Part shown: one piece after another, positions 1 to 53,157 of the stretch
Position numbering within the stretch: the stretch's first letter is position 1
How the letters are laid out: every line of letters begins with the position of its first letter
Source of the DNA: Marsupella aquatica
Lineage: Eukaryota > Plantae > Marchantiophyta
Length of the DNA stretch: 64,000 nucleotides
NCBI GenBank assembly: GCA_973895155.1
Contig: OZ316898.1
Coordinates: forward strand, 1-64,000
Reading direction: 5' to 3'
Position numbers and translations under genes: made by a program
Notes under the pieces: model-generated
Told to the model about the DNA's origin: nothing
Seen by the model: the letters and a program-made list of their open reading frames with translations, nothing else
The model's database searches: none

Positions 1-489
1 CAGAGCACACATGGAATCTGATGTCAGTAAGGCCCTTTTCTATTATAACTAACCTACCGCTAATTGGTCAAGTCTAAATTGTGCTAGAATGGAAGAAGAC
101 TGATCATAACGCTTGTGCTTTTCAGTGAGTATCGACCCAATTAAACAAGCATCTTTCAAGGAATGAACGAAATCTCTCAAATGAATCAGAGCAATGAGTG
201 AGTTGCTGCGATTCTTCTTCCTTCAAAGTCCCTACATATTGCTTTTTGATGTGAAGCTACCACTACCCGACATATGGACAGGGGCCCTAAGGCACTTTCT
301 GTCGGCCTCGTTTCCACCAGGCTGCTCCTACTTGGATGTCAATGTCTACCAAGGTGATTGCAGTGGTGATGCCATAGACCCTAATCTGTCACTCCGAATA
401 ATGTTGGACCCAGCAAAGCTGAGCTTAGAATAAACAATTGGGCAGCAACAGGCGTTTGATACCCAACGACGATTGGAATGGATTGAATG

Positions 490-531
490 CCTCTCTCCTC
501 TCCTCTCCTCTCCTCTCCTCTCCTCTCCTTG
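490..531. repeat. (CTCTC)n microsatellite
   Basis: cctctctcctctcctctcctctcctctcctctcctctcctt is visible directly. It explains the spurious GEERR repeats in overlapping ORFs. Confidence 0.9.
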
Positions 532-575
532 TCTCTGCTGCTGCCTTTTGAGCTGCAATCGGAAGCGCTTCATCT

Positions 576-750
576 TTCTTCGAGAACTCTGGCGATAGTT
601 CACATTTTGACCCGAAGCTGCCCTGACGAGATGTCAAGATCTCTCTGGTTTGAGAGTCGAATGACGGATTGTGAATGAGTGAGTTGACAAAGATCCACAA
701 ATGATTTTTGACCTGAAACGACTTCACCATCATGTGAGCCTTCCGAATCA
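576..750 (-). pseudogene. TOP2: Isolated fragment of DNA topoisomerase II (ATPase transducer region)
   Basis: Translation VKNHLWIFVNSLIHNPSFDSQTREILTSRQGSFGSKCELSPEFSKK matches the conserved eukaryotic TOP2 segment (NHLWVFVNxLIxNPxFDSQTKExLTxxxxxFGSKCEL). No flanking TOP2 sequence is seen. Confidence 0.8.
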
Positions 751-926
751 TAATGAAGTCCTTCCAAAACATCAAACACATTAGTCTTCAGGATGTCAAA
801 GTGTTCCCTGAAGAGCTTCTCGGTTTCCTCTTCAAATTTAGTTGCTGCAAACTTCCGAGCAAGTTTGAGCATCTGCCGTACATTATCTACTCCTAATCGT
901 TGGCAAAGCTCAGCCTCGCAAAACTC
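751..926 (-). pseudogene. Fragment resembling the C-terminal BTB/POZ-BACK helices
   Basis: EFCEAELCQRLGVDNVRQMLKLARKFAATKFEEETEKLFREHFDIL resembles the CExxLxxxLxVDNVxxxLxLA pattern of BTB-BACK proteins. It abuts the TOP2 fragment in another frame. Confidence 0.45.
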
Positions 927-2724: not shown

Positions 2725-3730
2725 GTGAGACGAAACTAGACGCGTCAATTTTTCCGTTTCTCATGTCTCGAGTAAGGCACGAATTAGAGTGGAGCCAATC
2801 CAGTACTTCACGGTGAATTCTAGCACACTATTGTGGCTGCGGTAGTAGGCAGATCGGTGCAGATTGACTTGTGTGTTCCGACAATGAGTGATTCTATAAA
2901 GCTGTGAAGAGGGTCTATATATGGCGGATCTTTATAGGTACGGATGGCTCATAGGCAGTTTTGTTGACTTTCGTGGTCGGAAGCTGCCTTCAATCTGTCC
3001 CGAGATAAGGCTGAGAAATGCTTGCCATATTCAGGGGAAACTAGGTTCTCATTGTGTGTAAATTAAGGCTTCAAGAAAAAATGACTAGTCTTGAGGGCTA
3101 TAGTTCAATTTTTATTGATCATTGATCTGAGGTTTTGTCCTTCTTCTACATTGCAGGATGTTGTGCATCTATAGTGAGAAATAATTATATCTCGTCATTG
3201 AGTTTGATGACCTGGACTTCAAGAGGCATGGACTTCTCCCCACATTTTGAAATTACATTCTGGTGGGTGCAATAGGTCCAATTTATATGTGTGGTGCAAC
3301 GTTACATTGAAAAACCTCAATTGGTGCTTCTACTAGAGCAAGGTTGAGGTGAGCCGGGGAGTTGGAGTTTCTATCTAATCTTTGCAATTCATATTTCAAT
3401 GAGATCTGTGCAGACACATTGACCGTGTATTTTTCTACAAGTTTTATTCTTCAAAAATCCAAAAAATGACATTTCCACAACCCACTCAAGTAAGTAACAT
3501 AATATCTATTTTTTTCAATCATTTTTAAAAAAATTATTAATATAATAGACATTATGGATTTAAGTAACTAAAAAATATTATATTATTACAAGTTTATATT
3601 AATTTTTTAATCAAAATTCTGATTGGTAATAAATATTTACTATATTTAATAGTGTAACAGTTTTATTTAAAAAGTTTGGAAAACAATTTGATTAGTACTG
3701 ACACAAAAATGCAATTTGACAATTTTGCAG

Positions 3731-5107
3731 ATGCTCCATAAACGAAGGGAGAGGAGAAAAAATGAAAATAAATTTCATGAATATGGCGCCGAATTTTCTA
3801 TCATAACATTTTGTTCAATATGGGATTATCTAAGCAAATTATGTGAATCTAAACAACAATTTATTTTATATTGGATTTTAAAAAATGAAAATATTTTTGT
3901 ATATTTTGTTACACACATTTTACAAATAAATGTGTCCAATTTTTCAAGAGCTAAATTTTTGAATGGGTATAACAACTGCAGAAGTGCAATTTCACCAATT
4001 CTCCCTCTTCAAACACTTCAACAAACCGAGAAAATCTTTCATCATCATCAACAGAGACAAAAATTGCCTCCACTATTGAAAAAATTCATGGGAAAATTTC
4101 ACATCCTTAACCTATCCCAACTCCGTACCTTACAAGTAGAGAGGGTAGCTTCTTGTAAAGTTGACAATACATTCTCTTCAACACAAGTAGAAGTGCAACA
4201 AATATCAAAATCACAACTGAAAAAATTGACTGGAGTGATAATGGGAAATTGGAATGAAGACATGACTAAAACCAATCATAGTAATCTTACATTCACATTT
4301 GAGCGTTATCCATCAAATTTTCTAGTGATAGAGAAATCTGAAAATATTGTTTACTTTTACGACAAGTCAGGGAAAAAGCCTTGGCTTGTAGCAATGCTTA
4401 TGCACCAACAAATATTGGGAGTGACAACATTACAATTCATTCGAAAACTTTTGAGTGCATTGTTTGTTGCTCATTCTCCATTTCAAAGAGGCGAGGGGAA
4501 AAAAGCTTTTGACAGCTTCATGACAGGATATGGTCCTTGGAATAGCAGTTACATGGGTGGCCGTTTGACTTATTACACACACCAGAAGAAGATGAATACC
4601 ATTTTCGATGATTGCCTTGATGTCAAAGATTTTGAGAAGTGGATCGATAAATATTCACATATTGAACTTATGGATATTATATTGGGGCTTTATATGTGGT
4701 GGTGCCCAGAGATGATAGAGTGCTTTTTGGAATACTCTCATCCGTACTTACTATCATCTGATGGTGACAAATATCATGGAAGTGAAGAGCAGATAGGGGA
4801 GAATGTTAGACCTAGTACTTACCAATTATATATAAGTGAGGATTATTGTGTGCAAACACATGCTGATGATGATGCAACTGACTTCACCTTAGCGTATGCT
4901 AGTCATCCTGACCATTTCCTTTCAGCAATCGATTTTGTAATTCCAGAGTATGGAATTCGATTGCCAATTAGAGATGGAAATCTATTTGCATTTCGGAGCG
5001 ATGTTGTTCATGGTACAGGCTTTAGAATGAAAACATCGAATCCTGCATATGTTGGAGCTATTACCGTGAATAAAAACCTCAGCAGACTGATGCAAAAATT
5101 ACATTAA
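3731..5107 (+). CDS. TET/JBP-like Fe(II)-dependent dioxygenase (copy 1)
   Basis: Uninterrupted ORF (track 3716..5107). The ATG at 3731 follows acceptor ttttgcag|. Motifs: MTGYG, then YISEDYCVQTHADDD (HxD at about 4859), DFVIPEYGIRLPIRDGNLFAF and VVHGT (distal His at about 5009), i.e. the HxD...H triad in a TET/JBP-type DSBH context. Homologous over its full length to 16076..17518. Confidence 0.8.
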   Translation: MLHKRRERRKNENKFHEYGAEFSIITFCSIWDYLSKLCESKQQFILYWILKNENIFVYFVTHILQINVSNFSRAKFLNGYNNCRSAISPILPLQTLQQTEKIFHHHQQRQKLPPLLKKFMGKFHILNLSQLRTLQVERVASCKVDNTFSSTQVEVQQISKSQLKKLTGVIMGNWNEDMTKTNHSNLTFTFERYPSNFLVIEKSENIVYFYDKSGKKPWLVAMLMHQQILGVTTLQFIRKLLSALFVAHSPFQRGEGKKAFDSFMTGYGPWNSSYMGGRLTYYTHQKKMNTIFDDCLDVKDFEKWIDKYSHIELMDIILGLYMWWCPEMIECFLEYSHPYLLSSDGDKYHGSEEQIGENVRPSTYQLYISEDYCVQTHADDDATDFTLAYASHPDHFLSAIDFVIPEYGIRLPIRDGNLFAFRSDVVHGTGFRMKTSNPAYVGAITVNKNLSRLMQKLH

Positions 5108-5989
5108 AATTATTGTGTAGATGTGCTCTCCCGGGGCAAGCTGAGAGCGCTTGGAGGGGCTACTCAAAGTGGTGAGTGCTCGTAGGGTGGAGATGACACC
5201 ATGGTCATTTTGGATTTAGCCTGGTCATCATTATATTTGGTATTGAAATTCAGATTCTGACGTCATTTTAGCGATTCTTTCAAGAAGAGTAAGGGTTTGG
5301 CATAATCTCGTTGAAAAATGGAATGTTGTCATCATGACTTTGCAATATTGGGCATGTTGAGGTGTGAAAGGTAAGGCATGTTACTTGTTATGGGGGTGAT
5401 ATATTGAAATGGGGAGGTTTTGCAAGATAGAAGAACTCAAATAAATCAACTCAAAGGTGGAATTGACATGATCAGCACACGTACCCTTGAGAGTAACAAA
5501 CACTTTGATGATGAGGCACCAACCACAAGTTGCAAACCCCAAAGGACAAGGGTGGGTGTGGATGTCCGGAAAATGGTCTTATTCTTGTGGGGTTAGTGGT
5601 ATGCATTCATTGTATGACTTTGTAGAAGAAACATACAGGCAACTTCACCTTGTTTAGTAAATCACCCTTATTGGGCTTGTTACTTGCTTCCCATGGGCTG
5701 AAGATACAACTGTAGAGATTCTATATAGGTGGGCATCCAAACTCATCAAGGGCATAGTTACACTTGATTTGCGTGAACACCTCCAGTCATCAAATTATTG
5801 AATGTTGTCCAAACTAATCTTCTAAGCCATTTTGGTTTGCCATGACACAACCCATGCAGACCATTGAAATAAGCACATGTGAAACTGATTTTTTTGAATA
5901 CCCTGTCTGATTCTTGTAGGCCCGCTTGTAGGTCCATTACAAGGAGAGTGAATTGCAGAATTGGCCATTGTTTCTAACGGGTCTGGAAG

Positions 5990-6665
5990 GCTTGACAAGG
6001 TTAGTACATCTTAACACTTGCATTTTATGATTGACATGAGGGCATTCCAGCACTCATGTTGCAAGGCAGGGGGCTGTTTCACCTGGATTCAATTATGATA
6101 AGAATTACATATAAAAGTAGTTCTAAAGGAAGAATTAAATTCACATCCTTTATTGCCTCCTATTATTTTCACCTTCCCATGTACTTGTTTCGTCTTAGGG
6201 TATCACAATATTTCTGGGGGCGGTGGTGGTTGGAAAAGGTTGGCACATTTTGACACTTGCATTTAACAATTGAGATAAGGGCATTCCGGCACTCATGTTG
6301 CAAGGCAGGGGGCTGTTTGACCCGGAGTCAATCATACAAAAATTATATATAAAAGTAGAAAGAAAAAAAACCAAATTCACATCCTACATTTCCTCCTACT
6401 GTTTTCCCTCTCCTGCTTGTTTCTATTATGGTATCATATTATTTCTAAAGAAGGAGGGGGGCAGCTCAAAAAAGTTAATATATCTTGACACTTACATTTT
6501 AATGATTGAGATGAGGGCATTCCGGCACTCATGTTGCAAGGCAGGGGGCTGTTTGACCCGGACTCAATCATACAAGAATTACATATAAAAGTAGAAAAGA
6601 AAAACCAAATTCACATTCTACATTTCCTCCTACTATTTTCACTTTCTTACTTGTTTCTATTATAG
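5990..6665. repeat. Tandem repeat, about 238-bp unit, about 3 copies
   Basis: ggcattccrgcactcatgttgcaaggcagggggctgttt recurs at about 6040, 6279 and 6515. Confidence 0.85.
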
Positions 6666-9296
6666 TTGTAGTTTGCCAGAGAGAACCAAAAGCACACTTT
6701 TATGTCTCTAAACTTTTATGAACCCTAAAGTTCCACTGACCATTTGTCTTATGAATCTATACAACACAGCGGTGTTATATGAATTCACATGGTCCGAGAA
6801 TTCCCAAGATTACAGGGATTTATGAAAATATACATTTTGACTAGGATGACAAAGATTTAGAGTAAAGAATTCTTTATTTTCACACAAAGTGCATTTTGGA
6901 ATGACATGGGAGTTTAAAAGTTTACATGGATATCCTCTACGAATGCATGATTCTTTCAACATCCCATCCGAGCTTATGACTCTTTTTGGTCTTTCGCCGT
7001 GGTTTAAAAAGCAAAAGCCAACGCCCGCTGAATGACTCCCTTTTTGCTAAAAGACGTTAAAACAAAAGCTCAATTTAGTCAATTGACACATTAGCTGTCC
7101 GCTATAAAGTTGGATTGCACGACATCACGAGTGACGTGTTTACCATGTTTTGGGAGCTATTCCTTCACAGTAGCTGTAACCTTCTCCCAAGCCTGGTGGG
7201 TTGTGTTGTTGAGAGATCGCTACTACTACAGTACTCGTTCTGTTGACGGACGATCAGCTGGGCAGGAAAGCAAGGAGCGATACAAATCAGACTTTGAGAT
7301 TTGTAACTCGATTCTGACCTCTGTGTCAATTAGTAACATTTGGCAGTACTATCTGCGGGTTTCCTTCTCAAGCTATCACCAATGGAGAAATCGAGTCGTT
7401 GGTCAGTCTGTTTTACTGGACCATTGCACCTTCATTCGCCGGTGCCCCATGATCAGAAACCAGCGTCAATTGTATCAGAATTTGTGAAATCAAGATCTAA
7501 AGTGCCTTGGTCCTCTTAAAGCGACAGGTTGCCAACCAGCTTTCATAGCAGATCGGAAGGAAAAATTGAACTAAGTCTGCCTCACTGAAGGTGCATGTTT
7601 ACGGATTTTACACGTCTTGCCTCTACCACTTCTGTTGACATTTTGTCCTAGCTCAGTGACTGAGGTAGACTTGTGATGATATCCGAAACTCTATGTTAAG
7701 TGTATGCGGAAAAGAGATAGTCCTATGAATATCTTAAGAACGTCCTTGAACTAAAGGACATGAGGGGCATTTTGACTAAAGCTTTGTACAGATCATTTAG
7801 AGTAGGTCCATATCAATAGACATAAGTTTACGGCTGGAGTTAGTAGCCATTCGGATTAATACAACACGGCACCTTAGGCATACTCCAAATCCCACCTTGT
7901 AATTTTACTGGAGACCCCAGTTTTGATCAGGTTGATGGCACTTTGTCTAGCTACTCAATTGATTCAGAGCCCTACACCAGCTTGCCAATTTGTGATGGCA
8001 TAAATGAAGGAATTTTGCGTCCTCATCGGCCGCTGCAGTCTAGCTCGTCTACCAGCAAGACAAGCGCGAACCATACTTACACCAATAGGTTCAGATCCAT
8101 GATTTAGGAAAATAACCTTTTTTGGGAAGCGTTCGCGGCACCAGATGGGACCCGGCCCCATGCCTATCGATCTCATGAGTGCCTCTGTAATTATTTGCCT
8201 TGTTTTGAGCTGTCACTTACATAATCGTACTGTCTGGAGTCTCCAGACAAGAAGTTTTGTTTGATTTGCCTTGTTTTGAGCTGAGGCAAGAATCGTACCC
8301 ACATCTTAATTTCAATGAAGAGCAGATTGAGACTCTGCAATAATACTGCAAGAAGTCGCCCACGTACGAAAGGTTGTTCTGAAATTGGCTAGTGACCGAG
8401 TTCCAGTAATAATGATTCAACTTAGATTACAAACGTTATAGACGAGGAGAGAAGTAGTTTTCACCGCATTCTGCAGACCACGACCGACCTAATCTGAAAC
8501 GTCGAGGCTCTTATTCACAATGAGGAGTAATCCCCAAAATCAGGCAGCTTGAAATCTGAAACCTTGGATAATAAGTGGGCTGCTATGGCAGTATAGTGTT
8601 GACAACACCTCAGAAACACAGACCTCTAAATCTTGTGGAGATGAAAGCACCGACTGATTTCTCACATGGTAAGGGACTCCATTAATCTTAATAAACGATC
8701 ATGATATGGCCAGGAACTAAACTGTAGCAGAAGATAGTTTATTGCGTTGATCTTTATGCACCACCAAGCCAGTAGCATCTTCTAAACCAAGTCAACTGGA
8801 TAGAAAGTCGGAATTAGGTCCAGAACATTATTTTGTAGCTAAACAAAAACAATTACGACACAGGAGCACATATCCACCATCATTTCTTATGTTTTCCTAA
8901 ATTGCCATCTACAGAAAATATCGTAGATGTCCCTAGCCCTCATATGCAGAAGGCATTCACGAAATCACATTCCATTTCCAATGACAAGAGCATAGCTTAT
9001 AGGGAAGAGTACAACTGCAGCAGCTCGAAACAACCTAGACAGACATTGAAGGAGAAGTATTTCGCCCCGTACAGAGTGCGCATTTACACATTGGAGATTC
9101 GAGAAGAATTTTGATCTCGAAATACTTCACACTATTGTGTCATGTTGGTCATGCCAATTTGCACCTTGCTGCAAATGCATGGCTGGCTGCTGGCGCGGCC
9201 AAATAGAAAGGGGGAGTGTTGGGTAGACATTAGTCGTATGCGGGTGCTCATCTTGCTCTAAGATAGAGGCGATGGGGCAAGGGTAGGCGCTGAGGT

Positions 9297-9939
9297 ATGA
9301 TTAACAAAATATCGAAGCGCCTGCCGATTTGCAACAAAGGGAGTAATGGGCCGAATGACCCCAATGAACCAGGATCTGTAGGCGCCTCAACAACTGGAGG
9401 GGTTGGACCTGCAGCTCTGGCCCCAGCCCCGGCTGCTGCATATTTAGTTAATCTGCTGCGGGAGCTAGGGCTGCTGTAGGCCCCAGTAGCAGGAATAACG
9501 CTTTGATCAACGGCATCGGTACCCCAAGATTTGGACCAGGAAAGGAGAAGTTGTTACCAAACTTGACTCACAATGGTTGAGGTCCCTTTTTCTATCCTCT
9601 GCCTGCTTTCAAAGACCTTCCAAATTCTGACAGGCAGAACTTGTTCATTAACAGCTCCATCTTTGCTGTTACACTTTTGACTTCACTGACCCGACAAAGA
9701 ATGTCAATGACAAAGAGATTAAGAAGCAAACCTTAGTGGAGCTGATGGAAGATGCGACATCGGGAACAGGGAAGTTCACGGAGGCTGTGTTCGAAGATAT
9801 CACCAAAATGCATGTAACAAGCCTGTTTCGTACGCTACCCCCCTCCTCTCATGAAAATACCGGAGTTGATAACTTTGATCCCAAAGAGGAGGATCCAACC
9901 TTAGAACCGGCATGGCCCCATCTTCAAATACTGTACGAG
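9297..9939 (+). pseudogene. 5' fragment of a PP2A regulatory subunit B' (B56) gene, disrupted
   Basis: PAFKDLPNSDRQNLF, CCYTFDFTDPTKNVNDKEIKKQTLVEL and LFRTLPP...FDPKEEDPTLEPAWPHLQILYE are B56 hallmarks. It has stops and frameshifts upstream and ends after ILYE (gag|gtacgt). Confidence 0.85.
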
Positions 9940-12227
9940 GTACGTATTTGAAGTCAATTTACAGGATATCAATGAAGTCAAAAGCGGGCACTTCGGGTTT
10001 CAGCCCGGATCGCTCAGCTTGAGCATAGAATGCACTCAGTTACAGCAGTCAAATCTCTGTGGCTAGACGTACTACGAGTGCTGAATCTGCACTTCAATGT
10101 AGCCGCTTCGGTGAGCGTCCGAGGTCCACACTTTGAAGCATTCAGCTCCACTGGCGCACAATAAGAGGCACGACAAATCTAATTACTTTTGAACAATCTA
10201 ACTCTCTCAAAAGCGGGACTTCTAGGCAATGGATCATCAAGGTTTAATTCACTCTCCACAAGGTGCATGATCTTGCAACTTGGTCAGCACACTCTTCGGT
10301 TCAATCCCCCCAAGACTTTGGGTCTGCTTAGCTTGGTCGGGATGCCCGATCCTACATCCTATTGTTATATGTTGTTTCTTTGGCGTCTAGGTACCGTGGT
10401 TTCCCCATATGGATTGATCTGGGCCTTTCTCCCCTGACTCTCGGCCTTTGGCACTGAAGCAAAAGTTTTGGCCTTTTCTTGCCTCCTCAGCTCAACCTCC
10501 CCCTCTCACCCACCCCTTCCTGAAAGGAAAAAAAATTCACACATCAGGAGAGTCCGTAAAGCAGGTCAGTTGTAAGAAAGAGAAAAAGCTTAGCAAAAGT
10601 TTTGGCCTTTGATTGCCTCTCAACCTCCCCCTGCCACCCACCCTTCCCGAACGAAAGAAAAATTCACACATCAGGAGAGTCCGTAAAGCAGGTCAGCTTG
10701 TCAGCTGTAAGAGAGAGAAATATTGTTAGTATATAGGATTTATGTTGGCCCTATGAAGGTGGGTCAAAGGTGTGCATTGCGCCTAGCTAGGGTGCCTGTA
10801 AGACGCATGTGTAATGGTGGAATGCAATTCTATACATATTATTTTTGAGGCTAAGGGGGTGGGACAAGGTGGCTGCACAGAGCCTGTCATTATGTTATCA
10901 GTATGCTCATCATCTTTCCTCTCCAGCCTTCTGCTGCTATGCTTGGGAAGCCTGGGATTCCCTTTCGGGTTGTTATGTTGTTTTGGACTAAGATAATCCA
11001 ATGAAGGTAAACGACAGAACAAGAAGATGATATTTCTAGGAGAAGCTCCGTGCATGCACAATGGGTTAAAGAGTGGAGATTCGGACACAGGAGGCCGGGG
11101 AGAAGGACCCTGAAAATCGGGAATCGGCAAAGGAAATGTAAACACAAGCAGCGTTGTGCTAGAGCAGCGGCCAGATTTGCTTCTTTAAATAGAAGGCAGT
11201 AGAAAGGGAAGGGGGGGATGTAATCAAATTCGCGGCAGCTTCATTCGGTGGGCCACATTGGCTGACAATTGTTTTTTGAAACCGCGGACTTGAGATTTAG
11301 TTGGCTTCAATGTGCTGGGCACTTAAGATCGACCTTGGAGCTTCAAAAGTAGAAATTGGGATGTATGAGCTGCAATTGCCAAAATGCGTATGAGCTGCAA
11401 TTGCTAAACTGCGTCTTGTTGATTGATCACTCTACTATAGAGGCCGCCTTCAGTATATTGACCCCACGTCAGTACAGTGCTCGCTAAAATGATTAGAGAC
11501 TACAAACATATAAAGACAAATAATGCCACTCAATTGACGACAATCTTTATTTTTGGTTCTTTTGTTTGTACACCAACAACTGATTCATAGATCCACAATT
11601 TCATCATTATTGTAATGCAAGGTACACGGGCCGTACCAATCCGGCAGAAGTACATCTTGGTTCGTCTAAGCAACTATCCTTTCGTTCTCGGTTGACTAAC
11701 CCCTATCTGCATTTCAGCGCACTGAGACCATTCTTGGTCCGTCTAAGGAACTATCTTCTTGCTCTCGCTTGACTAGTCCTTATCAGTATGTGCATCCACT
11801 GAGACATTGCTTGTGGAGAGAGCATTTGCTTTGAACTAGATCAAACAGAGTACTAAAGCTCTATTATTGAACTTCAAGGAATTCTCGTGGTTCAAGCATC
11901 GTCAGAATGAGCTGAAAATTCAAATACAGCTCTGGAAATAAATGAGTAACAACATCAATTGACACAGCTGTGCATGTAACTCGGGCAACTGCAATGAACA
12001 TTACTGAGAGCTAATAAGTCTTCTGAAGGACTAGATTTCACTTTTGTCAGCTGCGGCTAGGATGTTGTACTTCTCCGCCCGGACCGCCCGGGTCTCCGCC
12101 TCTCTTGGGTGTGTTAGATATTTCTCTTCTTGTCGGTACTTGAGTCATTTGACCACCGGCATCAATGAAGGCAGCAACTGCAGCCATCGCTGCTCCGGCT
12201 CCCAGTCCCACAGGTATTCTGCCAGCT

Positions 12228-12485
12228 CTCAAGGCCTAGAATAGAACCAGCCAAAACAAACTTGAGAGGGGACAAAAACAGCAACCCTTAATCAGCGCTA
12301 ACCTCTGTTAGGGTATATGCTCAAGCCTAGAATAGAACCAGCCAAAACAAACTTGAGAGAGACAAAAACAGCAACCTCTGTTACGTATATGCTCAAGCCT
12401 AGAATAGAACCAGCCAAAACAAACTTGAGAGGGGACAAAAACAGCAACCCTTAATCAGCGCTAGCCTTTGTTAGGTATATGCTCC
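12228..12485. repeat. Three tandem copies of a 70-95-bp unit
   Basis: cctagaatagaaccagccaaaacaaacttgaga recurs three times. Confidence 0.8.
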
Positions 12486-12819
12486 CAGCAGGGACATTAC
12501 CTTGTTATTTTGGGGGGCGGTTTGTCTTTCTGGCTACTTTAATTAGCGGTGTTGTGCTGGGGATAACCGGGGACATAGATTGGTTAGGACAAGGCACTTG
12601 ATACTCACTAGCATAATCTTAATTAAACTAACAAAACTCCACGAGGCAAGCATGACCTTCTTTCTCAGATCAGGTTTAGGTAGCACGAAGTCACTACAAT
12701 TTCTGCATGTGTAGCACAAGATTAATCATATATATACTACTAGTTAGCGGGGATCAATTGTACAGGCTTCATTAGTATCTCACTTGGAATCAGACTTGGG
12801 TGGCATAATAGCGGTACAA

Positions 12820-13018
12820 TACTATGTGCTTCGGTAGCTTAATATGATCGATAGAGTTTGTACCATCGGCGAGAGGTGCTCGCCTACTATGTGCTTCTGT
12901 AGCTTATGATCGATAGAGTTTGTACCATCAGCAAGAGGTGCTCGCGGAGGTGCTCGCCTACTATGTGCTTCTGTAGCCTATGATCGATAGAGTTTGTACC
13001 ATCAGCAAGAGGTGCTCG
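12820..13018. repeat. Three tandem copies of a 63-75-bp unit
   Basis: actatgtgcttc...tatgatcgatagagtttgtaccatc...gaggtgctcg recurs three times. Confidence 0.8.
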
Positions 13019-13259
13019 TCGTCGTTGTAGTATGTTGGCAGGCATATATTTCTGTTGCTCTCGACATTTGCAGAATTTTAAGATACTCGTACCAGTTGAT
13101 AGTGGGAGTTGTAGACAACGTTCCTTTGGAACTCACAGGCACTTCTAGCTCGTTCATCAGCGGGCCAGCAAGCCAGCCAGCCACGCCGTCGTCAACTGAG
13201 AGAGGTAATTCAATTTCTCCGTGAACCTTGTGCATTGATAAAAATGACACTGCTATCTT

Positions 13260-15170
<1,911 letters not shown>

Positions 15171-15864
15171 TTACATGGTATGCTTCTTAGTTGGTATTTT
15201 TGAAATGTCTTTTAATTGGAAGTTCACACCCATTGATTCAGTCCTTAGATTGATTTTTGGTAGGGTGCAGCTCATATAGAATTAGTGATACAATGATTGT
15301 TTCTTTCACGTTCCTAACCTCACAGAGTTTACTTTAGTCTCTTTTGGATACCCTGTTACAATCTACAAAGTAGTTATTTGCTTTTAGGTAAACATTTGTC
15401 TTGCATGTCATTTGTACTTTGCTAGGTTGGAAGTCTAAATGCTAACACTTTGGCAACAATAGGTTCCAGTTTCCTATGTTAAATGTGTACAGTCAGAAGG
15501 GAGCCAGAGTATATTCTTAAGGGCTTTTGTTCTTCAAGGACTTACTGCAAGCAAGTGAAACTTGTTAGTTAAGTACAAGCTCATTTTGGCATTAATTTGA
15601 TGTTTGTTTGCAATCAGCTCAAGTTGCTACATGGAGCCCCAAATACTAACCTAGAAGTTGGGAAATCATACTTGAATTTCGTTTATTTTCTCTAAGGTGA
15701 GTTCCTACTATCATTTATTTGTTTTAAGTATAATTCATGAAGGACATGGAAAAATAAAATAAAGCAAAGAAAATATAAGTATTTTAAAACAAATATTGAG
15801 TATATTTTTCTACTTATTATCTTATGAATTTGCCTAACATATGTATTATAAAACTAAACAATTG

Positions 15865-16042
15865 ACTTTATTTTGAAATATATATCTGGCATGCTTTTCT
15901 GATTATTGTTATTTAATAGTTCCAGATAGTTTGGCCGGAGATATGTATTTTGAAATATGTATCTGGCATACTTTTCTGGTTATTGTTATTTAATAGTTCC
16001 AGATAGTTTGACTGGAGATATGTATTTTGAAATAAATATCTG
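15865..16042. repeat. About 73-bp tandem repeat (about 2.4 copies) in the AT-rich intron upstream of TET-like copy 2
   Basis: tattttgaaatat...tatctggcat...ttattgttatttaatagttccagatagtttg repeats. Donor aag|gtgagt at about 15696 and acceptor ttttcag| at 16075. Confidence 0.75.
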
Positions 16043-16075
16043 TATAAATTAAAGTATGTTTTTGGAATTTTTCAG

Positions 16076-17518
16076 ATGGCAAAACGAAAGTTTTGGAAAG
16101 TGAACAAACAAATGAAGGAAGATGGCAAATATGAGTATGAGAAAATGAAATTTGCAATGGACGTTTTCATTCAAATTTTTTCAGCGATCATGATATTGCA
16201 TCCACGTTCACAAAAGTTTGCCATGTTATTTCTTCTTCAAGAAGATAATATTTTTCAAGCATTTGTACAAAATGTATTGAATATTAAACATACTGTATCG
16301 AAAGCAATGATATATAATGCTTACTATAGATTTAAAGAAATTGGACCACCAAAAACCTTTACTTCTTGCGCATGGGAGAATATCTGTGATATTCTTGATC
16401 ATCATTATTCTTTAGATTCAGTACCCTATAGTATAAGAAAATACATCCATTTTCTTAGGTCATCTACCTATATTGAAGAGTGTGTAAAAAGAGAAAAAAA
16501 TATGCTAGAGAAAAAAGAAATGGTGTTTGAAAAAATTATTTCCCAATTTTGGTGGGGAAATGTGAATCCAATGGAATTAGTGCAAGGATTTTGGGGAAGA
16601 GTTGATGATGAAGGTGAATGTTTTTATCGCTTAGAATTAGAAAAAACATTACAAATACTTTCTAGAAGAAAAAACAAAGGGAAAGAAATTGAAATTGAAG
16701 AGGCACCTATATATAGGGAGCTTCCAATTTCTTACGTTGAAATCCAAAAAACAAAACAGGTTACGGAGATCTATGATAAAATCTCAAGTGAGCTAGTGGG
16801 TATCCATATTCGCCCTAAAGATGTTCATAAATCTTTTACTATATTGATGCGAACTTATCTTAAAGATCTTTTTTGTGCTCATCCAAGTTCAAAAAGATCT
16901 AAAACTAGAGCATCCTATATGAGTGAAATGGTGGGGTTCGGTCCATTTCACCATACATGGACACCTGGAAAAAATGTTACATCTTTCTACACTCATAGTA
17001 ATAAGTTAGTAAAAGCTTCAAAACCTTTAAAAGATTTTGGTAGATTTATTGATCGATTTGCACATGGGGCTGTGGTAGAAATTTTAATGTCTATGTGGTT
17101 TAGATATTATCCTACGTTATTACATACTTTTCTTAGATGTTGTAACCCTTACTTAGAAACTTCCCAATATATTAAGGAAGGTGTTGAGATACCATTTTTT
17201 GATAAGCACATGAAGAAGGGACCTCCTGCTTATCAACTATTCATTACTAGAGATTATTGTTCACGTTTTCATGTGGACAATGATAGGACAGAGTGGACAC
17301 TAGCATATACTAGTCACCCTGATGAACATATTTCACCAGTTGATTTTGTATTTGCCAAACATGGATTTATATTACCTTTGCATAATGGTGATTTATTTGC
17401 ATTCAAAGGCAAACATCTCCATGGTATGGCTTTTAGAAAACCAACAGAAAATCCTGCATATATTGCAGCTTTAGTTATGAATAGTGGCTTAGGACAATTA
17501 TTAAATAGAATAGAGTAA
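16076..17518 (+). CDS. TET/JBP-like Fe(II)-dependent dioxygenase (copy 2)
   Basis: Uninterrupted 480-aa ORF with the ATG right after acceptor ttttcag|. Motifs: MVGFG, FITRDYCSRFHVDND (HxD at about 17270), DFVFAKHGFILPLHNGDLFAF and HLHGM (His at about 17420). Clear paralog of 3731..5107. Confidence 0.8.
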   Translation: MAKRKFWKVNKQMKEDGKYEYEKMKFAMDVFIQIFSAIMILHPRSQKFAMLFLLQEDNIFQAFVQNVLNIKHTVSKAMIYNAYYRFKEIGPPKTFTSCAWENICDILDHHYSLDSVPYSIRKYIHFLRSSTYIEECVKREKNMLEKKEMVFEKIISQFWWGNVNPMELVQGFWGRVDDEGECFYRLELEKTLQILSRRKNKGKEIEIEEAPIYRELPISYVEIQKTKQVTEIYDKISSELVGIHIRPKDVHKSFTILMRTYLKDLFCAHPSSKRSKTRASYMSEMVGFGPFHHTWTPGKNVTSFYTHSNKLVKASKPLKDFGRFIDRFAHGAVVEILMSMWFRYYPTLLHTFLRCCNPYLETSQYIKEGVEIPFFDKHMKKGPPAYQLFITRDYCSRFHVDNDRTEWTLAYTSHPDEHISPVDFVFAKHGFILPLHNGDLFAFKGKHLHGMAFRKPTENPAYIAALVMNSGLGQLLNRIE

Positions 17519-19829
17519 ATTAGATATGTTTCAGGTATCATGAAACAAACTTTAATGTATCTTTTTAGAAACAATTATGAAATTTATTAAATATGTATTT
17601 AATATTTGGACCAATTTAGTTTAGGATTGTAATTGTAATATAAATACTTATGTTTGACAAAATCTTTATGTATATTGACTTACTTTAGAAAATAATTTAC
17701 AACTCTTATAGCTCTAGAAGTTAATAGGCCTAGGGTAGAGTAGGTAAAATCTATAAGGCAAAACTAACACACCCAAATAAATCAAAATTATCCCACCTTA
17801 TGTAGATAATTTGCGTAGCCAGAGGCCTTTATTGGGTCAGCCTACTCAGGCACCAACTATATATGCAGCCCAAATGCCAACTCTACAGTCCAAATAGGTT
17901 AATTGGCTAGTTAATGCTACAAACTTTCCATGACCTTGGGTGGAGGGTTTGAAGACCTTTGGTGGAGGGCTTGAAGGGGTTTAGGGAGATTTAAACCAAG
18001 GAGAAGTAGGGCAAGTTTCGGGATGTGTTTGTATTTCAGGTGTCTGATGCTCATAATTAGACCATCCTCAGTCCAAGCGGGGACATTAAAACTCTCCTTC
18101 TCAATTAAAAGCCTGTGATGCAGCAGGCTATGAATGGGCTATGACCATAGAAAACACATTAGAAATTGTCAGAATTGCAAATCAAAGACAATGTCCAACG
18201 TCATGGTTGTAAATCAACGTTGTTTTTAGGAACAAAATAAGCATCAACTCTGCGCTGCCCTATCCTGTGCTTTACTGCTCTCCATCCATGGCCGTTCTCA
18301 GTTGAAGAAGCATCGAGACGATCAACCCAGATGTTTAGAGAAAAAGGAGGCATACTCTGTACTATGATTACTGCTTCTTTATTACCGGTCGACTACTGTC
18401 AATCCATATTTGATGCTACATGTTTTGCAGCACAAGAGCTCTCCTTAGGGTCACTGTTTGTTAGTGTCATCCATGCCTCCCGGGTAGTAGATGTGCTGTG
18501 TGTTGATCTCCTGAACGGGGCGCACATTTGGCATAAGCCGCAGGAACATCACAAACCAAAAGTCCGTCATATCATTTCGATTGCACCAATTTCATTTGAT
18601 CAGGGTTAACTCTTCAATTTGATAACAGGCTCCATAACTACCAACCAGAAGCCAAGTGTCAATCTCTTCTTGTGAAAAACAAGTGAATGCTCACCTCAAG
18701 GGTCTTGCCGTCTCCACGACTGTAGCGTGGGCAGAGTGGTAGTAAATTTTGGCAGAGACATCCACGGTTCCTCGTCGATGTCTACGGAGCTCTGGTTGGC
18801 TCCCTCGCTGCATTTGTTCCATTCTCTAGACAACTCTCCCTAGTGAGCAGGCCCATTGGGCCCTTCACTATAATCTCATTCGATATCTGGACCGACACAA
18901 GACCCCCCAAAAATCAATGATGTGTGGAACCACTATGGCATTGAACTCGAACCGAGCTTTGATGGTGAATATGCTCTGCAAAGTCTGAAGAAAAGAAGTT
19001 TACTGTGAATGTACCTGATTTGGTCAGCACAGATTGTAAACCAGATGAAAATAGCCCCGAGAGGTTGGACTGTCGGACAGGGGCCGGGGGCTGTCGTCTC
19101 TTAATGCTCTCAAAATTGTTTCACTCTTTGGTGAATTATAGGTGAAGCAAGATACAACACAGAGTCCTCAAGAGTATTTTGAGCCTGGTCCAATGTGAGC
19201 TGGAAAATCGCTTGGTTCCGTGGGGGCAAAGTAGAGTAATGTTATTAGTTAATAGAGGATTTAGACGGTTATCATATGCTTCAATTGTTACGAGCTTATT
19301 TGCATTAGACAAGCACAAAGAGAGCGTTGCAAATGGTCTCTCGCTTAATTCTTTGACAAAAACAGAGTCAATTTTGACTATCATATATTTTATTCTGAGG
19401 TTTGGTTTTGTTCTCTCTCAATGCGTGATCATCAATGGTTTGATTCACCTTTGACGGTTGTTTCACGAAGACGATTGAAAGTTTATGTATTGAGGTGAAT
19501 GTGGCAACCCCAATTGCTCTACAGATCTGGTATTCTGCTGAAGAAACCATTCATGCCGTCAAAACCTGACAAGTCACAAGTTTAGGGTCATCATTTATTT
19601 TGGTACTGTTGTGAATGTCTGTTTCAAGGAGATTACAATTGAATTTGCTCTCCTGACACAGCAACTGAAGCGCAATATATATATTCCTAGATTAGTTGAT
19701 CTTGAACGCAAAAGTCTCCTTTTTGGATAGCCTACATGTTCAAATGAAACAGAAACAAAGGGTACGTAGTTTGAGACTCTAGATCATAGACCCTTGCTCT
19801 GGGCACTGCGGCTGAGACAAAGCAGGCTT

Positions 19830-22319: not shown

Positions 22320-25300
22320 TCACCGAAATTCAGGATACTTGATCCTCACAATGGTTGCTACAAGACGCATAAAATTGTTGCCCAGAGCCTCAGGACTTGT
22401 AGACACAACCCATTCACACAGCTCCTGGTCACTTTTCCCTTTGATTTCAGGAATTGCTCGGAATAAATCGCTCTGTATGTTATCAAATCGCCATGCCTTC
22501 CACACAAAAAGCCGCAATCTCTCTCCTGATTCATCTTCACACTGATCTCCATACAGCCCTTCATGAAATCTCATCCCACTAGGCTGGTGTGGGAAGTGAC
22601 ACTTGAAACAAGTGTCTGGTCGAGAAGGAAACTTGTTATCGCAATTTGCACGGTTGTGTGTTCCTAGACACTTCACACATCGTCCCCGTACATAAGGACA
22701 TTGCAAAATACCATGAGGAACACTCTTTGAGAGGGGACTCCAACACATCAAGCACTTTTTCCTATCCCCAGCAAATTTACGGATGATACAAATCTTATTC
22801 ATGGCTTCGTCAATTCTTTGTTTGATGAGTGTTGGTCGAGCTCTTGCCACAACCGTGGTTGTGGTTCCTTTGCCTTGGGATGATCCGAGTGATGATGCTG
22901 GTGTTGTTCTTTCACCTGGTGCTGTAACCCTAACACTCTGTCCTCCTTGTATGTTTTGGGAGATGCTCCCCTGAGATACAATTTCAACCACTTCTGACCT
23001 AGCTTGTGATAATTCTTCGGCCTCATATTCCATTGGTAGTTCCTGATTGTCTGCTGCTTGGGAGCATATGTCACAAGGAATTGCATCCGGGATGAGGTAA
23101 CACATCTGTGGCTTACCATCAACGCTAGCATGTAGTGCAAAGCGACGACACATTTTTGTCTCCTCAATCCATTTGTTTGGAATCTTGAAGTTGGAGTCCA
23201 TCCTCAAGGCCTCATTGCGGTAGCTGGAGTTAGAAACAATAGTGCTTATTGCTAATAAACCATCACGCCCAGCTCGGCCAGATTCCTGATGAAATTGCTC
23301 AAAGGACCTGAAATTACCTCTGTGAATTACAAGTCTGATTGACTTGTAATTATAGCCAGAACCAATGACCCCAGTTGCCACCATGATTTCACAACCCTTC
23401 GACTCCCACTTCTTCAAGGTTTTCACGGTGTCTGCTGTGCTACATCCTGCATGCAAAAATGTACAGCACAAGTTCCTGGCTTCGAGTAGCTTTGCCATCT
23501 CTTGGACTTCATCTCTTGTTAGGCAATAGACAATGGCCCGGTCATGAACCAGGCTAGATCTCTTCCAATCTTGAAGCTGTCTAACTATTTCTCCATCCAT
23601 GTCAGGCACTTCCACAACCATGTATCGGATGTTTGGCCTAACAGTAGAAGAACGAACCCAATGTAATCTTGAACCCAAAGTCAGTTCGATATCAGATTGT
23701 TGTGTGGGTGGTAATGTCGCTGTTAATCCTATAATTTGACAAGGAACTTTCATTAGAGAAATCAGATTTCTCATTTTTGGACGGAAATGACACTGTAGTG
23801 TATGAATCTCATCAAAAACAATCGAATGCAATCTTTGTGTAGCTTGCAAGTGGTTTGCAAAGACACCAAATGTATCTGAATCAGCTGCAGTCTCGATAGA
23901 TACAAAAACAATTGCAGGTGTTACTCCTATCCCGAGTGCAAATCCACTTGTGAACACAGTGTGACCAATTCCTGCTTTTCTGCATTCAGATAAGTGACCC
24001 GATATGAGAGATTTGAATGGGACTACCACAATCACTGTTTTGTCCATCAATGTGGAAGGGGCCATGAAAATCAATGACTTTCCTGTTCCAGTGGGAAGTA
24101 CAGTTACAAAATCCACAGTGTTTTCAATAGCCAAAGCAACAGAGATTGCTTGTTCAGTTGACCTCCACCTTTTGTGACCCAACTTGTGTAGAGCTATGGA
24201 AGCTCTTATACTTGTGTCGTGACAGATGTGCAGTGCCGAATCAACATCTCCCACAACTGATGTTGATGGTTCTCCATAGGCAGGGCAATAAACAACCCTT
24301 GTCTTGCTTGGAACATGATCAATTTCAAGCTCAATGTCATGACGTGGACGTAGAACAGTAGTGGTTCTTGGAAAAGGATCTAGTGTGACTTCCCTGCAAC
24401 CTGTTGTTGAGCTATCCAGATGAATCAATCTTGGGGACTTATCCGAAAGATTAAGCAATGCATGCCACTTATCTGTAAATATTCGGAATGCTCTCAAGAG
24501 ATGTCCATCAATAGCTCTTAAATCTTTTACACTTTGAGCATAATGATGTCCCATTGTAGCTGTTGTATGTCCACCTGCCACATCTACAATATCATCAAGA
24601 TCTTGAGTGCGTTGGTCTCGAATCTTTTCTGAAAAAAATGCTGCTAGGTGTCGGTATTCTGAAAGCCCGAATGTGACTCCACAACGCTTAAAGAAATTGT
24701 TGTGTATGCTCTTGGAAAGATCATGTGCATCTTGCTTTTTATCCATATCAACGAACCAACAATCATCATAATTACGGGCAACCTCCTTTCCCCATATTTT
24801 CTGTGCAACATAAGATTGTGTAGGCCTCACCAAACAAAAGTATACCAGAAACAGAGTTCTTAAAGAACTTGGAAGAAACCGTATAAGTGGTTTCATTGGA
24901 GCACCTGTATTTGCACCTTTATGATAGGTTTGAAAGAGCGCTATTGTATGATGCTCTAACAATTTTGTTGTTGGATCATCATCTGGGCCTGCTGTTGCCC
25001 AATAAAATGACCTCTCGCTTGTGGCTGTGTTGCGAATCAAGAAACTGTTGTACTCTTCGCCCCTTGCTGGTAGACCGGCAGTGAAATGTATAAGCAGATT
25101 CAATTTTTCTTGTAAATCAGAGCAAGCAGTCATCCACTTATAAAGTGTGATATCATTCCAAATGACATCATTTCGATCTGTCCGCCCGAGAATAAAGTGT
25201 CCTCTAATCTTAGGATCAACAAACAAGTGTGTTAGTAGATCGAGGCCATGTTGCTGAAGAATCCGGTTGCGAGGATCTATGACAAAGTTGTACCCAACTT

Positions 25301-27281
25301 CTGTGTTGTTGACATCGTCGTAAATAGCACGACTCTCCTTAAGTAATTTGTCAACCCAATCTGTTCGGAGACCAAGAAGCACATCACAATTTAAAATTGA
25401 GTGGGCTTCTTGAATAATAGCATGCACCATATCTCGAAAATTGTCGATTGTAATAGATTCACCATCAACTAGACATGCTGTATTATTGGCATTCAATGGT
25501 ACTAGTCTTGGCCATACTGGAGTCCCTGCAGTAATCCTATTTGCCAAGCGCAGAGATTGCGATACAATAGTAAATGGAGTAGGTAGTGCTATGTCACTTA
25601 AATATTGAAGAAGTCGATCAGCTTCTTCATTAAGAATGGTGCTTGGGTTTTTATGCCAAAAACATTGTGCAAGGTGCATCAAAATGGTCACCCTAGCCCA
25701 ATATTTGAGTATCGCCATTGGTTGTGTAAGATGACGAACATGCCGAAATGAATACTCTTCTGCTTCTGGACTGTGGCCAACTTTTATGAGTGAATGTAAA
25801 ATAAGAAACCGAGTGAAAATACAGTTCGCTGCTCTTCCTGCTTCAAGTGTTGCAGGCATCTTTGGAGTCCAAAGATGAATCAACACATTATGTAGAACAG
25901 CTAAATCAACATTGTCAATAGAATTGTCATCTAATTCATTGAGTTGACTCATGAATTTTTGAAGAGCAATTTCCATTTCTTCTCTGTTTGTTTGAAAAAC
26001 ATGAATGTCCGAACTAAGCTCATTAGAAGATGATCGAAGCAAGCAGAGAATGAATTCTGTGATTATATCACAGTACCTACTCCTTGATGATTTTGAGTTC
26101 AATTGATTGAATCCCACTGCAACATCATCATTGATATTTGTCTTCTCCACTAGTCTTCTCAATCTGTAATCCACCTCTTTAAGAACCAAATCTTGTACAT
26201 TGTTCATGTAGATAGTCACCACTTGACTGACATATGAGAGTGGAGATTTGCCCTGCTTTGGTGGTGGGAGCATCTGTGCTTTCACCTGCAAAAATGGTAC
26301 CCCTTTTGGCATGAATTGGGCCGCAAGCTCATGCCATTTAGACTGTGCTAGCCATGGAGTTAGCTCAGCAATTGGAGGTAGAAGTTCTAACCGCAAAGAC
26401 TGAAAATGGTCATCAAACTCCTTTGTGATTATAGCCCTCAAACTTTTAGATTGCAAGTGACAGTCATCCCCATCGAGATTGAGATTGTGATGTTGAACAC
26501 TGAAGTATTTGAGGCCTATAACACGATCTGAGAGGATTTGAACTTGGCATTCACTCTTCACATTGACATAGGACAACTCAGGATGTTTTCTCAAACGATG
26601 ATTGGACATTGACCTTTTCTCCCCACAATAGTAGATGCATTGTTTGCAAGAAAAGCCGTGTCGAATGACAACACCTGGTACTGGAGAAAGCAATGCAGCT
26701 GGTGGATCTCTTGTATATGGTAATATGGATGTATCATCCATGCTTGTAAAAGAGAACTGTTGTAAGCTCCTCAATAGTTGATGACTGTCGTAGTCTGATG
26801 CTATTCGATGACACCTTGATTTCTCCCGTTGATGCTTTTGAACATGATGAATGATATTGATATTTTCATTGTATATGAGTACCGAATGACACTCTATACA
26901 TACAAGGAAAACCAATTCCTCATGACGAACAACGCAGAGATTAACACTTCTCAAGATCTCTGGTGTACCAGAATGATCTGGTGTAATGCACAATCCTTCA
27001 TTAACCGCCAAGTCGTGTGGATCAACAAATCTTTCGACTTGATTAACATGGATTGTGTCATAGTGTCGGCGAAGACTATCGCCGGGTGTGTAATACTGAG
27101 AACACATATTATCGGGGCATGCGAACATCCCATTTTCAGACTTGTGGAGGATCTCCACAGTGCCATCGCAATGCTTGAATTTGAACGTCATCCTGTGCTC
27201 AAAACGTTTGTGAGCATCTCTTGCTCTTGCTGATTGAAAAATCTGCTCACACGCACTACATGGAAAAATGGTTGTCTCCAT
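22320..27281 (-). CDS. Zn-finger + tyrosine-recombinase-like + RecQ-family helicase fusion protein (resembles fungal telomere-linked helicases)
   Basis: Intronless 1653-aa ORF. N-terminal C2H2 fingers (CSAC..HKRFEH; CPDNMC..HYDTIH; CIEC..HHVQKH; CKQC..HRLRKH). YR-like series AGLPARGEE / YHKG / EYRHLAA / GGH..HHY. RecQ/SF2 motifs LPTGTGKS, DEIH, LTAT, HAG, VAT and QESGRAGRDG, the RecQ Zn module CRR..C..CDIC, and C-terminal Cys/His knuckles. Confidence 0.9.
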   Translation of the reverse strand: METTIFPCSACEQIFQSARARDAHKRFEHRMTFKFKHCDGTVEILHKSENGMFACPDNMCSQYYTPGDSLRRHYDTIHVNQVERFVDPHDLAVNEGLCITPDHSGTPEILRSVNLCVVRHEELVFLVCIECHSVLIYNENINIIHHVQKHQREKSRCHRIASDYDSHQLLRSLQQFSFTSMDDTSILPYTRDPPAALLSPVPGVVIRHGFSCKQCIYYCGEKRSMSNHRLRKHPELSYVNVKSECQVQILSDRVIGLKYFSVQHHNLNLDGDDCHLQSKSLRAIITKEFDDHFQSLRLELLPPIAELTPWLAQSKWHELAAQFMPKGVPFLQVKAQMLPPPKQGKSPLSYVSQVVTIYMNNVQDLVLKEVDYRLRRLVEKTNINDDVAVGFNQLNSKSSRSRYCDIITEFILCLLRSSSNELSSDIHVFQTNREEMEIALQKFMSQLNELDDNSIDNVDLAVLHNVLIHLWTPKMPATLEAGRAANCIFTRFLILHSLIKVGHSPEAEEYSFRHVRHLTQPMAILKYWARVTILMHLAQCFWHKNPSTILNEEADRLLQYLSDIALPTPFTIVSQSLRLANRITAGTPVWPRLVPLNANNTACLVDGESITIDNFRDMVHAIIQEAHSILNCDVLLGLRTDWVDKLLKESRAIYDDVNNTEVGYNFVIDPRNRILQQHGLDLLTHLFVDPKIRGHFILGRTDRNDVIWNDITLYKWMTACSDLQEKLNLLIHFTAGLPARGEEYNSFLIRNTATSERSFYWATAGPDDDPTTKLLEHHTIALFQTYHKGANTGAPMKPLIRFLPSSLRTLFLVYFCLVRPTQSYVAQKIWGKEVARNYDDCWFVDMDKKQDAHDLSKSIHNNFFKRCGVTFGLSEYRHLAAFFSEKIRDQRTQDLDDIVDVAGGHTTATMGHHYAQSVKDLRAIDGHLLRAFRIFTDKWHALLNLSDKSPRLIHLDSSTTGCREVTLDPFPRTTTVLRPRHDIELEIDHVPSKTRVVYCPAYGEPSTSVVGDVDSALHICHDTSIRASIALHKLGHKRWRSTEQAISVALAIENTVDFVTVLPTGTGKSLIFMAPSTLMDKTVIVVVPFKSLISGHLSECRKAGIGHTVFTSGFALGIGVTPAIVFVSIETAADSDTFGVFANHLQATQRLHSIVFDEIHTLQCHFRPKMRNLISLMKVPCQIIGLTATLPPTQQSDIELTLGSRLHWVRSSTVRPNIRYMVVEVPDMDGEIVRQLQDWKRSSLVHDRAIVYCLTRDEVQEMAKLLEARNLCCTFLHAGCSTADTVKTLKKWESKGCEIMVATGVIGSGYNYKSIRLVIHRGNFRSFEQFHQESGRAGRDGLLAISTIVSNSSYRNEALRMDSNFKIPNKWIEETKMCRRFALHASVDGKPQMCYLIPDAIPCDICSQAADNQELPMEYEAEELSQARSEVVEIVSQGSISQNIQGGQSVRVTAPGERTTPASSLGSSQGKGTTTTVVARARPTLIKQRIDEAMNKICIIRKFAGDRKKCLMCWSPLSKSVPHGILQCPYVRGRCVKCLGTHNRANCDNKFPSRPDTCFKCHFPHQPSGMRFHEGLYGDQCEDESGERLRLFVWKAWRFDNIQSDLFRAIPEIKGKSDQELCEWVVSTSPEALGNNFMRLVATIVRIKYPEFR

Positions 27282-52830: not shown

Positions 52831-53157
52831 TGATCCCTTGGTGTATTGGGGGCCGTGGGAGGGAGCCACGAGGAACAACGCAAGGGTAAGGAAACCCTAT
52901 AATAAACCCTATATGTCGGGGAGGGAGGGTGGACAGAGTTGATGCGAGGGGAGTATGGGAAGAAGGCCGCAGTGCTATCCGGGCTCCCAAAGTAGTGACT
53001 TTTGAAGAATGGCACGGGGATCGACTTGCTTTGTAATGTTGGTTCCTTGTATGTTCATGGCGGGACGGTCTTTTTCGGGCACTCATGGCAAAAAGACCAC
53101 GAAAAAGACCGCAAAGACCGGGCATTGCGATCGCTGGGCTGCACAAAAATGTATATA

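Follow-up and report, generated by a model that had tools for sequence, protein, structure and literature searches.

The 5-methylcytosine-modifying enzyme 1 of the green alga Chlamydomonas reinhardtii (CMD1) uses ascorbate as its co-substrate. In the canonical 5-methylcytosine (5mC) oxidases, human TET2 and Naegleria NgTET1, the C5-carboxylate of 2-oxoglutarate (2OG) is bound by an arginine (R1896 in TET2, R289 in NgTET1), and CMD1, an accepted TET homologue, has no functional Arg at the 2OG position; an Asp or Asn at His+5 contacts N4 of the flipped 5mC in the TET family, and an aromatic residue stacks on the base (PMC7854593). A further group, the fungal TET/JBP proteins (for example CcTet of Coprinopsis, Pfam PF20515), is often found on DNA transposons. 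Plants are described as TET-less and as removing 5mC only via glycosylases; oxidised methylcytosines have been detected in them repeatedly, and their writer is not known (PMC13638503). Our literature search returned no report of a land-plant TET in searchable papers.

We analysed a 64,000-nt stretch of Marsupella aquatica DNA (Marchantiophyta; contig OZ316898.1, positions 1 to 64,000; hereafter the window), in which the original prediction had placed two intact TET/JBP-like genes at 3731-5107 and 16076-17518, each with its ATG directly behind a splice acceptor. Both open reading frames, ORF1 and ORF2, were recovered at these coordinates, and both start codons follow a pyrimidine-rich tract and CAG (ttttgcag at 3723-3730 and tttttcag at 16068-16075). 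The upstream introns and mini-exon listed here were recognised by sequence pattern only.

3466-3489, plus strand: possible 24-nt mini-exon upstream of ORF1, with an ATG start and an in-frame join
3490-3730, plus strand: putative ORF1 leader intron, from a GTAAGT donor at 3490 to an AG at 3729-3730
3731-5107, plus strand: ORF1, intact coding sequence (stop included) for a 458-aa TET-like protein, assigned by homology to ORF2 (E 2e-55)
15697-16075, plus strand: putative ORF2 leader intron, from a GTGAGT donor at 15697 to an AG at 16074-16075
16076-17518, plus strand: ORF2, intact coding sequence (stop included) for a 480-aa TET-like protein
16076-16546, plus strand: ORF2 N-terminal helical domain, residues 1-157
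16547-16729, plus strand: ORF2 charged linker of low model confidence (pLDDT 32-49), residues ~158-218
16730-17515, plus strand: ORF2 predicted catalytic double-stranded beta-helix domain, residues ~219-480, aligning to TET2, CMD1 and NgTET1

The ORF1 frame is already open from 3716, and its 458 residues are counted from the ATG; the protein begins with a basic cluster (KRRERRK, residues 4-10) followed by the helical N-domain, with the catalytic domain starting at about residue 195. A 77-nt tandem repeat (2.3 copies, 15869-16042) lies inside the putative ORF2 leader intron. Given local composition, the probability of frames this long remaining open is ~1e-16 for ORF1 and ~1e-18 for ORF2, and 500 shuffles gave open stretches of at most 128 codons.

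Both genes belong to a small, unannotated family, in which they are old paralogues. Their products align end to end (BLASTP E 2e-55) with 25% identity overall, at a divergence of about one change per site. The paralogy predicted originally is thus borne out, although the estimate of roughly half identity in the core was slightly too high (43% over the last 105 codons); the N-terminal motif quoted as common to both falls inside the full-length alignment. The NG86 dN/dS between the paralogues is ~0.3-0.4, a value that is unreliable because dS is saturated. Selection had been proposed from frames staying open while neighbouring host genes decayed. Long-term constraint is upheld by the open frames and by consensus residues that are lost in a truncated relic (L004) and still present in ORF1; the decay of neighbours was covered in part, with one DNA gyrase B fragment (425-781, minus strand).

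Taken singly, ORF1 and ORF2 matched no Pfam family and no PDB sequence, and word-indexed protein searches with ORF2, the family profile and the relative P0025 returned nothing outside the family. Signal came from relatives: of 36 family members, 7 match PF20515 (2OG-FeII_Oxy_6; five members) or PF12851 without reaching the gathering threshold (34.9 bits; the best match scores 20.6), with best E values of 2.9e-4 and 1.4e-3, respectively, and alignment at the right profile positions. These two Tet-like families are the only Pfam families with recurrent sub-threshold matches, all others being hit by no more than one member. Searched against all PDB sequences, the catalytic-core profile (A4) had CMD1 as its only significant match (E 0.0098; the alignment runs from HxD to HGT), which suggests that, among proteins of solved structure, the green-algal enzyme is the nearest in sequence. 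The full-length profile (A1) retrieved no TET from the PDB; its sole match, USP16, was dismissed as spurious, and one putative family member (P0023) was dropped as a repeat-protein false positive. The suggested comparison with TET_JBP and Tet-like profiles came out negative for the window proteins themselves and gave a weak signal through the sub-threshold relatives and the core profile.

An AF2 model of ORF2 (pLDDT 78.9, pTM 0.77) contains a double-stranded beta-helix nearest to solved TET-family structures: CcTet occupies Foldseek ranks 1-7 (E 5e-6) and CMD1 comes next. All TET2, CMD1 and NgTET1 entries outrank every non-TET entry, with 20-60% more aligned residues. The N-terminal helical domain, common to full-length family members, had no significant structural relative. 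The structural check proposed at the outset thus led to known TETs and not to 2OG oxygenases acting on other substrates, and the TET/JBP reading is supported by the modelled fold and weakly by sequence. Both proteins are probably very divergent TET/JBP-superfamily Fe(II) nucleic-acid base dioxygenases, encoded by single-copy host genes that sit in repeat-rich DNA and in no recognisable transposon.

Another class of 2OG/Fe(II) oxygenase, either an AlkB-like N-demethylase or repair enzyme or a prolyl/lysyl hydroxylase, would owe its likeness to TETs to the common double-stranded beta-helix. With VIA-align, CcTet indeed scored no better than AlkB (11.7-12.8). We nonetheless regard this explanation as unlikely: it is opposed by the Foldseek order, with CcTet and CMD1 on top, by the placing of all TET2, CMD1 and NgTET1 entries above every non-TET entry, and by CMD1 being the one significant PDB match. 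The Pfam families of AlkB and P4H also draw no sub-threshold match from any family member, whereas seven members match the Tet-like ones.

The HxD...H triad reported in the original prediction is present in both proteins, within the following stretches.

4859-5050, plus strand: ORF1 active-site stretch, with H377 (4859-4861), D379, D381, H427 (5009-5011), R432 and A439-Y440 (5048-5050)
17270-17461, plus strand: ORF2 active-site stretch, with H399 (17270-17272), D401, D403, H449 (17420-17422), R454 and A461-Y462 (17459-17461)

Across the family, the triad residues are retained in every member covering them except one decayed member; in the core alignment neither His varies and the Asp hardly does, and the His-His spacing of 50 equals that of NgTET1. 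The conserved Asp of ORF1 and ORF2 lies at His+4, one residue off the TET position, which CMD1 fills with its base-contacting D350 and which is also the Asp position in three members (P0014, P0028 and P0033). The canonical 2OG-binding Arg on the last core strand is missing from both window proteins, which have Ala-Tyr where TET2 and NgTET1 have R1896 and R289, with no Lys or Arg in the strand; within the family, an Arg there is confined to the outgroup members P0025 and P0030. Given this replacement, the enzymes may use a different co-substrate, as CMD1 does.

The window proteins also differ from the described enzymes in architecture. Relative to TET2 and NgTET1, they have neither a Cys-rich domain nor a CXXC domain, identity is 8-11%, and no match was found at the sequence level. 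Identity to CMD1 (PDB 7cy4-7cy8) is ~12%. That enzyme is the larger protein and carries additional domains, the alignment shows no Trp opposite its 2OG-blocking W358, and the N-terminal helical domain is specific to the ORF1/ORF2 family. Similarity to the fungal TET/JBP proteins extends beyond the Foldseek ranks and PF20515 matches, since each group forms a multigene family in DNA rich in repeats.

A working scheme may be drawn from these features. Each protein has a basic, NLS-like N-terminus, then the helical domain peculiar to the family, a linker that is disordered, and the C-terminal double-stranded beta-helix, in which H377/D379/H427 (ORF1) or H399/D401/H449 (ORF2) would hold Fe(II). A 5-methylpyrimidine, most likely 5mC, would be flipped from the DNA into the pocket, where its methyl group would be oxidised or otherwise modified. 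Either 2OG could be held differently, with the conserved Arg at distal His+5 and the Tyr as candidates, or another co-substrate could be used, as ascorbate is in CMD1.

The setting raises the question of whether these genes are mobile-element cargo countering methylation-based silencing, possibly with a neighbouring telomere-linked recombinase-helicase gene. The region is transposon-rich, with copia ORFs, a 1,653-aa OrsD and RecQ-like ORF lies 4.8 kb from ORF2, and fungal TET/JBP genes on KDZ, hAT and other DNA transposons offer a precedent (PMC12730594). Identical proteins are on record neither for this ORF nor for ORF1 and ORF2, and an Rfam scan of positions 1-30000 was blank. However, neither gene is bracketed by terminal repeats, inverted or direct, at least 60 nt long, the flanks are unrelated, and only a 170-nt coding core can be aligned between the loci (66%). 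The ORF2 stretch assembles as a single contig at flank depth, only two copies occur in the window, and at about one change per site the paralogues give no sign of recent transposition. The anti-silencing role inferred originally thus finds no backing in terminal repeats, common flanks or copy number, and we consider cargo status quite improbable.

Contamination is unlikely, because ORF2 is spanned by one 2,172-nt contig (15981-18152; 0 or 1 differences) whose depth matches the main contigs of the flanks (120.8 versus 122.7 and 196.7 versus 190.2), in runs of two studies that carry two organism labels; the sole ORF2 difference between labels is synonymous. A foreign source, named beforehand as a possible refutation, was thus looked for and not borne out. 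GC3 is very low (0.23-0.30), which could be a sign of low expression or foreign origin. Least probable, with only a slim chance, is that the genes are catalytically dead, as relics or pseudo-enzymes, or that they were brought in by a contaminant or a recent horizontal transfer and have no role in the host: the missing 2OG-binding Arg, the low GC3, the lack of an RNA run among those holding the locus and decayed copies elsewhere (L004, L005) would fit, but they are set against the conservation of the iron triad and its neighbouring motifs in a family whose members have diverged to ~25% identity, frames intact against odds of ~1e-16, flank-like depth in both studies, canonical AT-rich putative leader introns, acceptor-like sites that also closely precede the ATG in the contigs of two relatives, and metagenome- and viral-contig scans that were blank for a donor. 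A giant-virus origin was considered in view of the low GC3, but the blank viral scans lend it no support.

An intact, constrained, multigene TET/CMD1-like family in an early-diverging land plant would be a testable candidate for the question of plant methylcytosine oxidation, and its coding regions are short and intronless, so direct expression and assay are possible. The family could connect algal CMD1 to land plants, and with Tyr replacing Arg it provides a naturally altered co-substrate pocket. Tentatively, and with more doubt than confidence, we propose that bryophytes retain green-lineage, CMD1-related DNA-base-modifying dioxygenases that write oxidised or adducted 5mC through a co-substrate site in which Tyr departs from the canonical Arg, and whose genes recur, in repeat-rich or subtelomeric chromatin, next to those for telomere-linked recombinase-helicases. 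If this is true, some land plants would possess an enzymatic 5mC-oxidation or 5mC-adduct pathway besides the DME/ROS1 glycosylases.

Scanning 3000-18500 revealed exactly two mutually related long ORFs, for which the following features were located:

3731-5107, ORF1, 458 aa from its ATG
16076-17518, ORF2, 480 aa
3490, GTAAGT, canonical splice donor upstream of ORF1
15697, GTGAGT, canonical splice donor upstream of ORF2

BLASTP aligned the two proteins over their whole length (E 2e-55; identity 25%, rising to 43% over the last 105 codons), bearing out the paralogous pair of the original prediction, and the N-terminal motif quoted there as common to both lies inside this alignment. Under local base composition (GC 0.32-0.35), such frames would remain open with probabilities of about 1e-16 and 1e-18, and the longest open stretch in 500 shuffles was 128 codons. 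When ORF1, ORF2 and every family member were used as tblastn queries, the 64 kb yielded no other copy or fragment. As had also been predicted, a splice-acceptor-like site, consisting of a pyrimidine tract and CAG, directly precedes the ATG of each ORF. Together with the upstream donors and the AT-rich interval from donor to acceptor, this arrangement fits a putative leader intron in both genes. In contigs L001 and L002, which carry relatives from other samples, a similar acceptor-like site precedes the ATG by 14-15 nt, so the leader intron may be long established in the family. Because the relatives begin within about 40 residues of the same ATGs, ORF1 and ORF2 look like complete coding sequences rather than the last exons of larger genes. 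The putative ORF2 leader intron also contains a 77-nt tandem repeat (15869-16042, 2.3 copies, 92-94% alike), at which the Logan contigs of all runs end.

Assignment to the TET/JBP dioxygenases is well supported at the level of predicted fold. An AlphaFold2 model of ORF2, built from a 36-row family alignment, reached a pLDDT of 78.9 and a pTM of 0.77, with residues 219-480 mostly at pLDDT 75-96. Foldseek comparison of this model with the PDB placed CcTet of Coprinopsis at ranks 1-7 (E 5e-6), followed by CMD1 and then TET2, with plant and other 2OG oxygenases ranked lower. Structure comparison gave TET entries a modest margin over non-TET entries, about 1.5-2 Z, with a fully consistent TET-first ranking and longer TET alignments. 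At the sequence level, the same assignment is weakly indicated. Neither ORF individually matched Pfam or any PDB sequence; across every family member, sub-threshold matches were obtained to PF20515 (Tet-like 2OG-Fe(II) oxygenase; five members, best E 1.4e-3) and PF12851 (Tet_JBP; two members, best E 2.9e-4), and no other Pfam family was matched by more than one member. The matched profile stretches are the HxD and distal-His parts. A4, a 14-row profile of the catalytic core alone, was searched against all 177,635 distinct PDB sequences and found CMD1 as its best match (E 0.0098, the alignment starting at the HxD motif and ending at the distal H-G-T), the only other match having an E of 1.3. 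This green-algal TET homologue is thus, by sequence, the closest characterized relative.

The predicted iron triad was found in both proteins, as H377/D379/H427 in ORF1 and H399/D401/H449 in ORF2, and is kept by every member covering the site except the decayed P0013. The His-to-His spacing of 50 residues is the same in NgTET1. Residue roles in TET2, NgTET1 and CMD1 were taken from PMC7854593. An extra Asp after HxD is nearly universal in the family: it falls at His+4 in most members, including ORF1 and ORF2, and at His+5 in P0014, P0028 and P0033, where it matches the 5mC-N4 contact position of TETs. A separate note on this window had proposed Tyr in place of Arg at the co-substrate site, and this is partly supported: the Arg for the 2-oxoglutarate C5-carboxylate is absent from both ORFs, which have Ala-Tyr instead. 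The corresponding strand has no basic residue in either protein, and the Tyr, at distal His+13, has the offset of R410 in CMD1. Only the outgroup pair P0025 and P0030 keeps the 2OG-binding Arg. Another Arg is conserved at distal His+5 (R432 in ORF1, R454 in ORF2), and R454 and Y462 might line the co-substrate pocket of ORF2.

A word-indexed protein search gave no matches, and phmmer, run exhaustively against 1.84 billion cluster representatives, gave 33, one of which, a repeat protein, was a false positive. The relatives are all unnamed proteins encoded on short contigs from Logan, ENA or JGI. Intact, full-length proteins include P0001, P0004, P0014 and P0036, and others are fragments or decayed, such as the truncated tail on L004 and the frameshifted copy on L005. 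In a tree with P0025 and P0030 as outgroup, ORF1 grouped weakly with P0003 and P0013, the placement of ORF2 was not resolved, and branches were about 1 change per site. The flanks of the two loci are unrelated, with only 170 nt of coding core alignable (66%). Given these long branches and unrelated flanks, ORF1 and ORF2 are, on such comparisons, old paralogues and not recent copies.

Residence in the sequenced organism was evaluated from sequencing runs, all of them in the form of contigs, which showed no spliced joints. At the ORF2 locus, 93-96% of sampled words were present in runs with two organism labels from two studies. Four runs were compared over 13001-19000, and a single 2,172-nt contig spans 15981-18152 with no differences in run X1 and one in run X3, the synonymous 17275 G>A (V400). 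Contig depth was 120.8 and 196.7, and the contig next to it had depths of 122.7 and 190.2; ORF2 is therefore single-copy DNA of the sequenced organism. In X3, two label-B contigs match ORF2 to its stop (17519) and continue into unrelated A-rich sequence, and may represent a further or processed copy elsewhere in that genome. The Ty1/copia ORFs and TTTAGGG dimer in the window are compatible with a plant host. NG86 dN/dS between ORF1 and ORF2 was 0.39 over the whole length and 0.43 in the core, only a rough upper bound because dS is saturated. Better evidence of selection comes from the intact frames, from catalytic residues kept at about 25% identity and from the comparison of ORF1 with L004: at conserved family positions the ORF1 tail keeps the consensus, which is altered in the truncated relic (for example, H-G-T to H-C-R).

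Nothing at either locus marks transposon cargo. The transposon anti-silencing role raised in the original prediction is unsupported, as no direct or inverted repeats of at least 60 nt bracket ORF1 or ORF2 and the neighboring ORFs are anonymous except for a gyrase B fragment. The latter is a short ORF that matches the DNA gyrase B domain with an E of 1.8e-8 and is probably part of a host gene, either an exon or a fragment. Other features of the window are as follows:

425-781 (-), the gyrase B ORF
22320-27281 (-), intact RecQ-like ORF of 1,653 aa (domains OrsD, DEAD and Helicase_C), lying tail to tail with ORF2 on the opposite strand, 4.8 kb past it
28000-29460, G-rich satellite just past the OrsD/RecQ-like ORF, periods about 198 and 104 nt, units holding GGGTT and GGGTTTAGGG-like strings; GC skew 0.69 over 28-30 kb
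45455-50093 (+), Ty1/copia element whose long ORFs, one for gag-integrase (946 aa) and one for reverse transcriptase (634 aa), lie in overlapping frames
53055-54404 (-), 449-aa ORF, composed almost entirely of a tandem array (11 copies of 111 nt, 93% matches) and hence a repeat product; its weak TIG-domain match is doubtful
59270-60301, C-rich 122-nt satellite, 7.5 copies, then a TTTAGGGTTTAGGG dimer at 60288-60301 (-)

TET-bearing transposons of fungi are well described (PMC12730594), and CMD1-like proteins are apparently limited in distribution (2024 review, PMC11066809). No report of a land-plant TET/JBP homologue was found in the literature searched, whose reach did not extend to Iyer et al. 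2014. To the TET-like family, this window contributes two intact paralogues.
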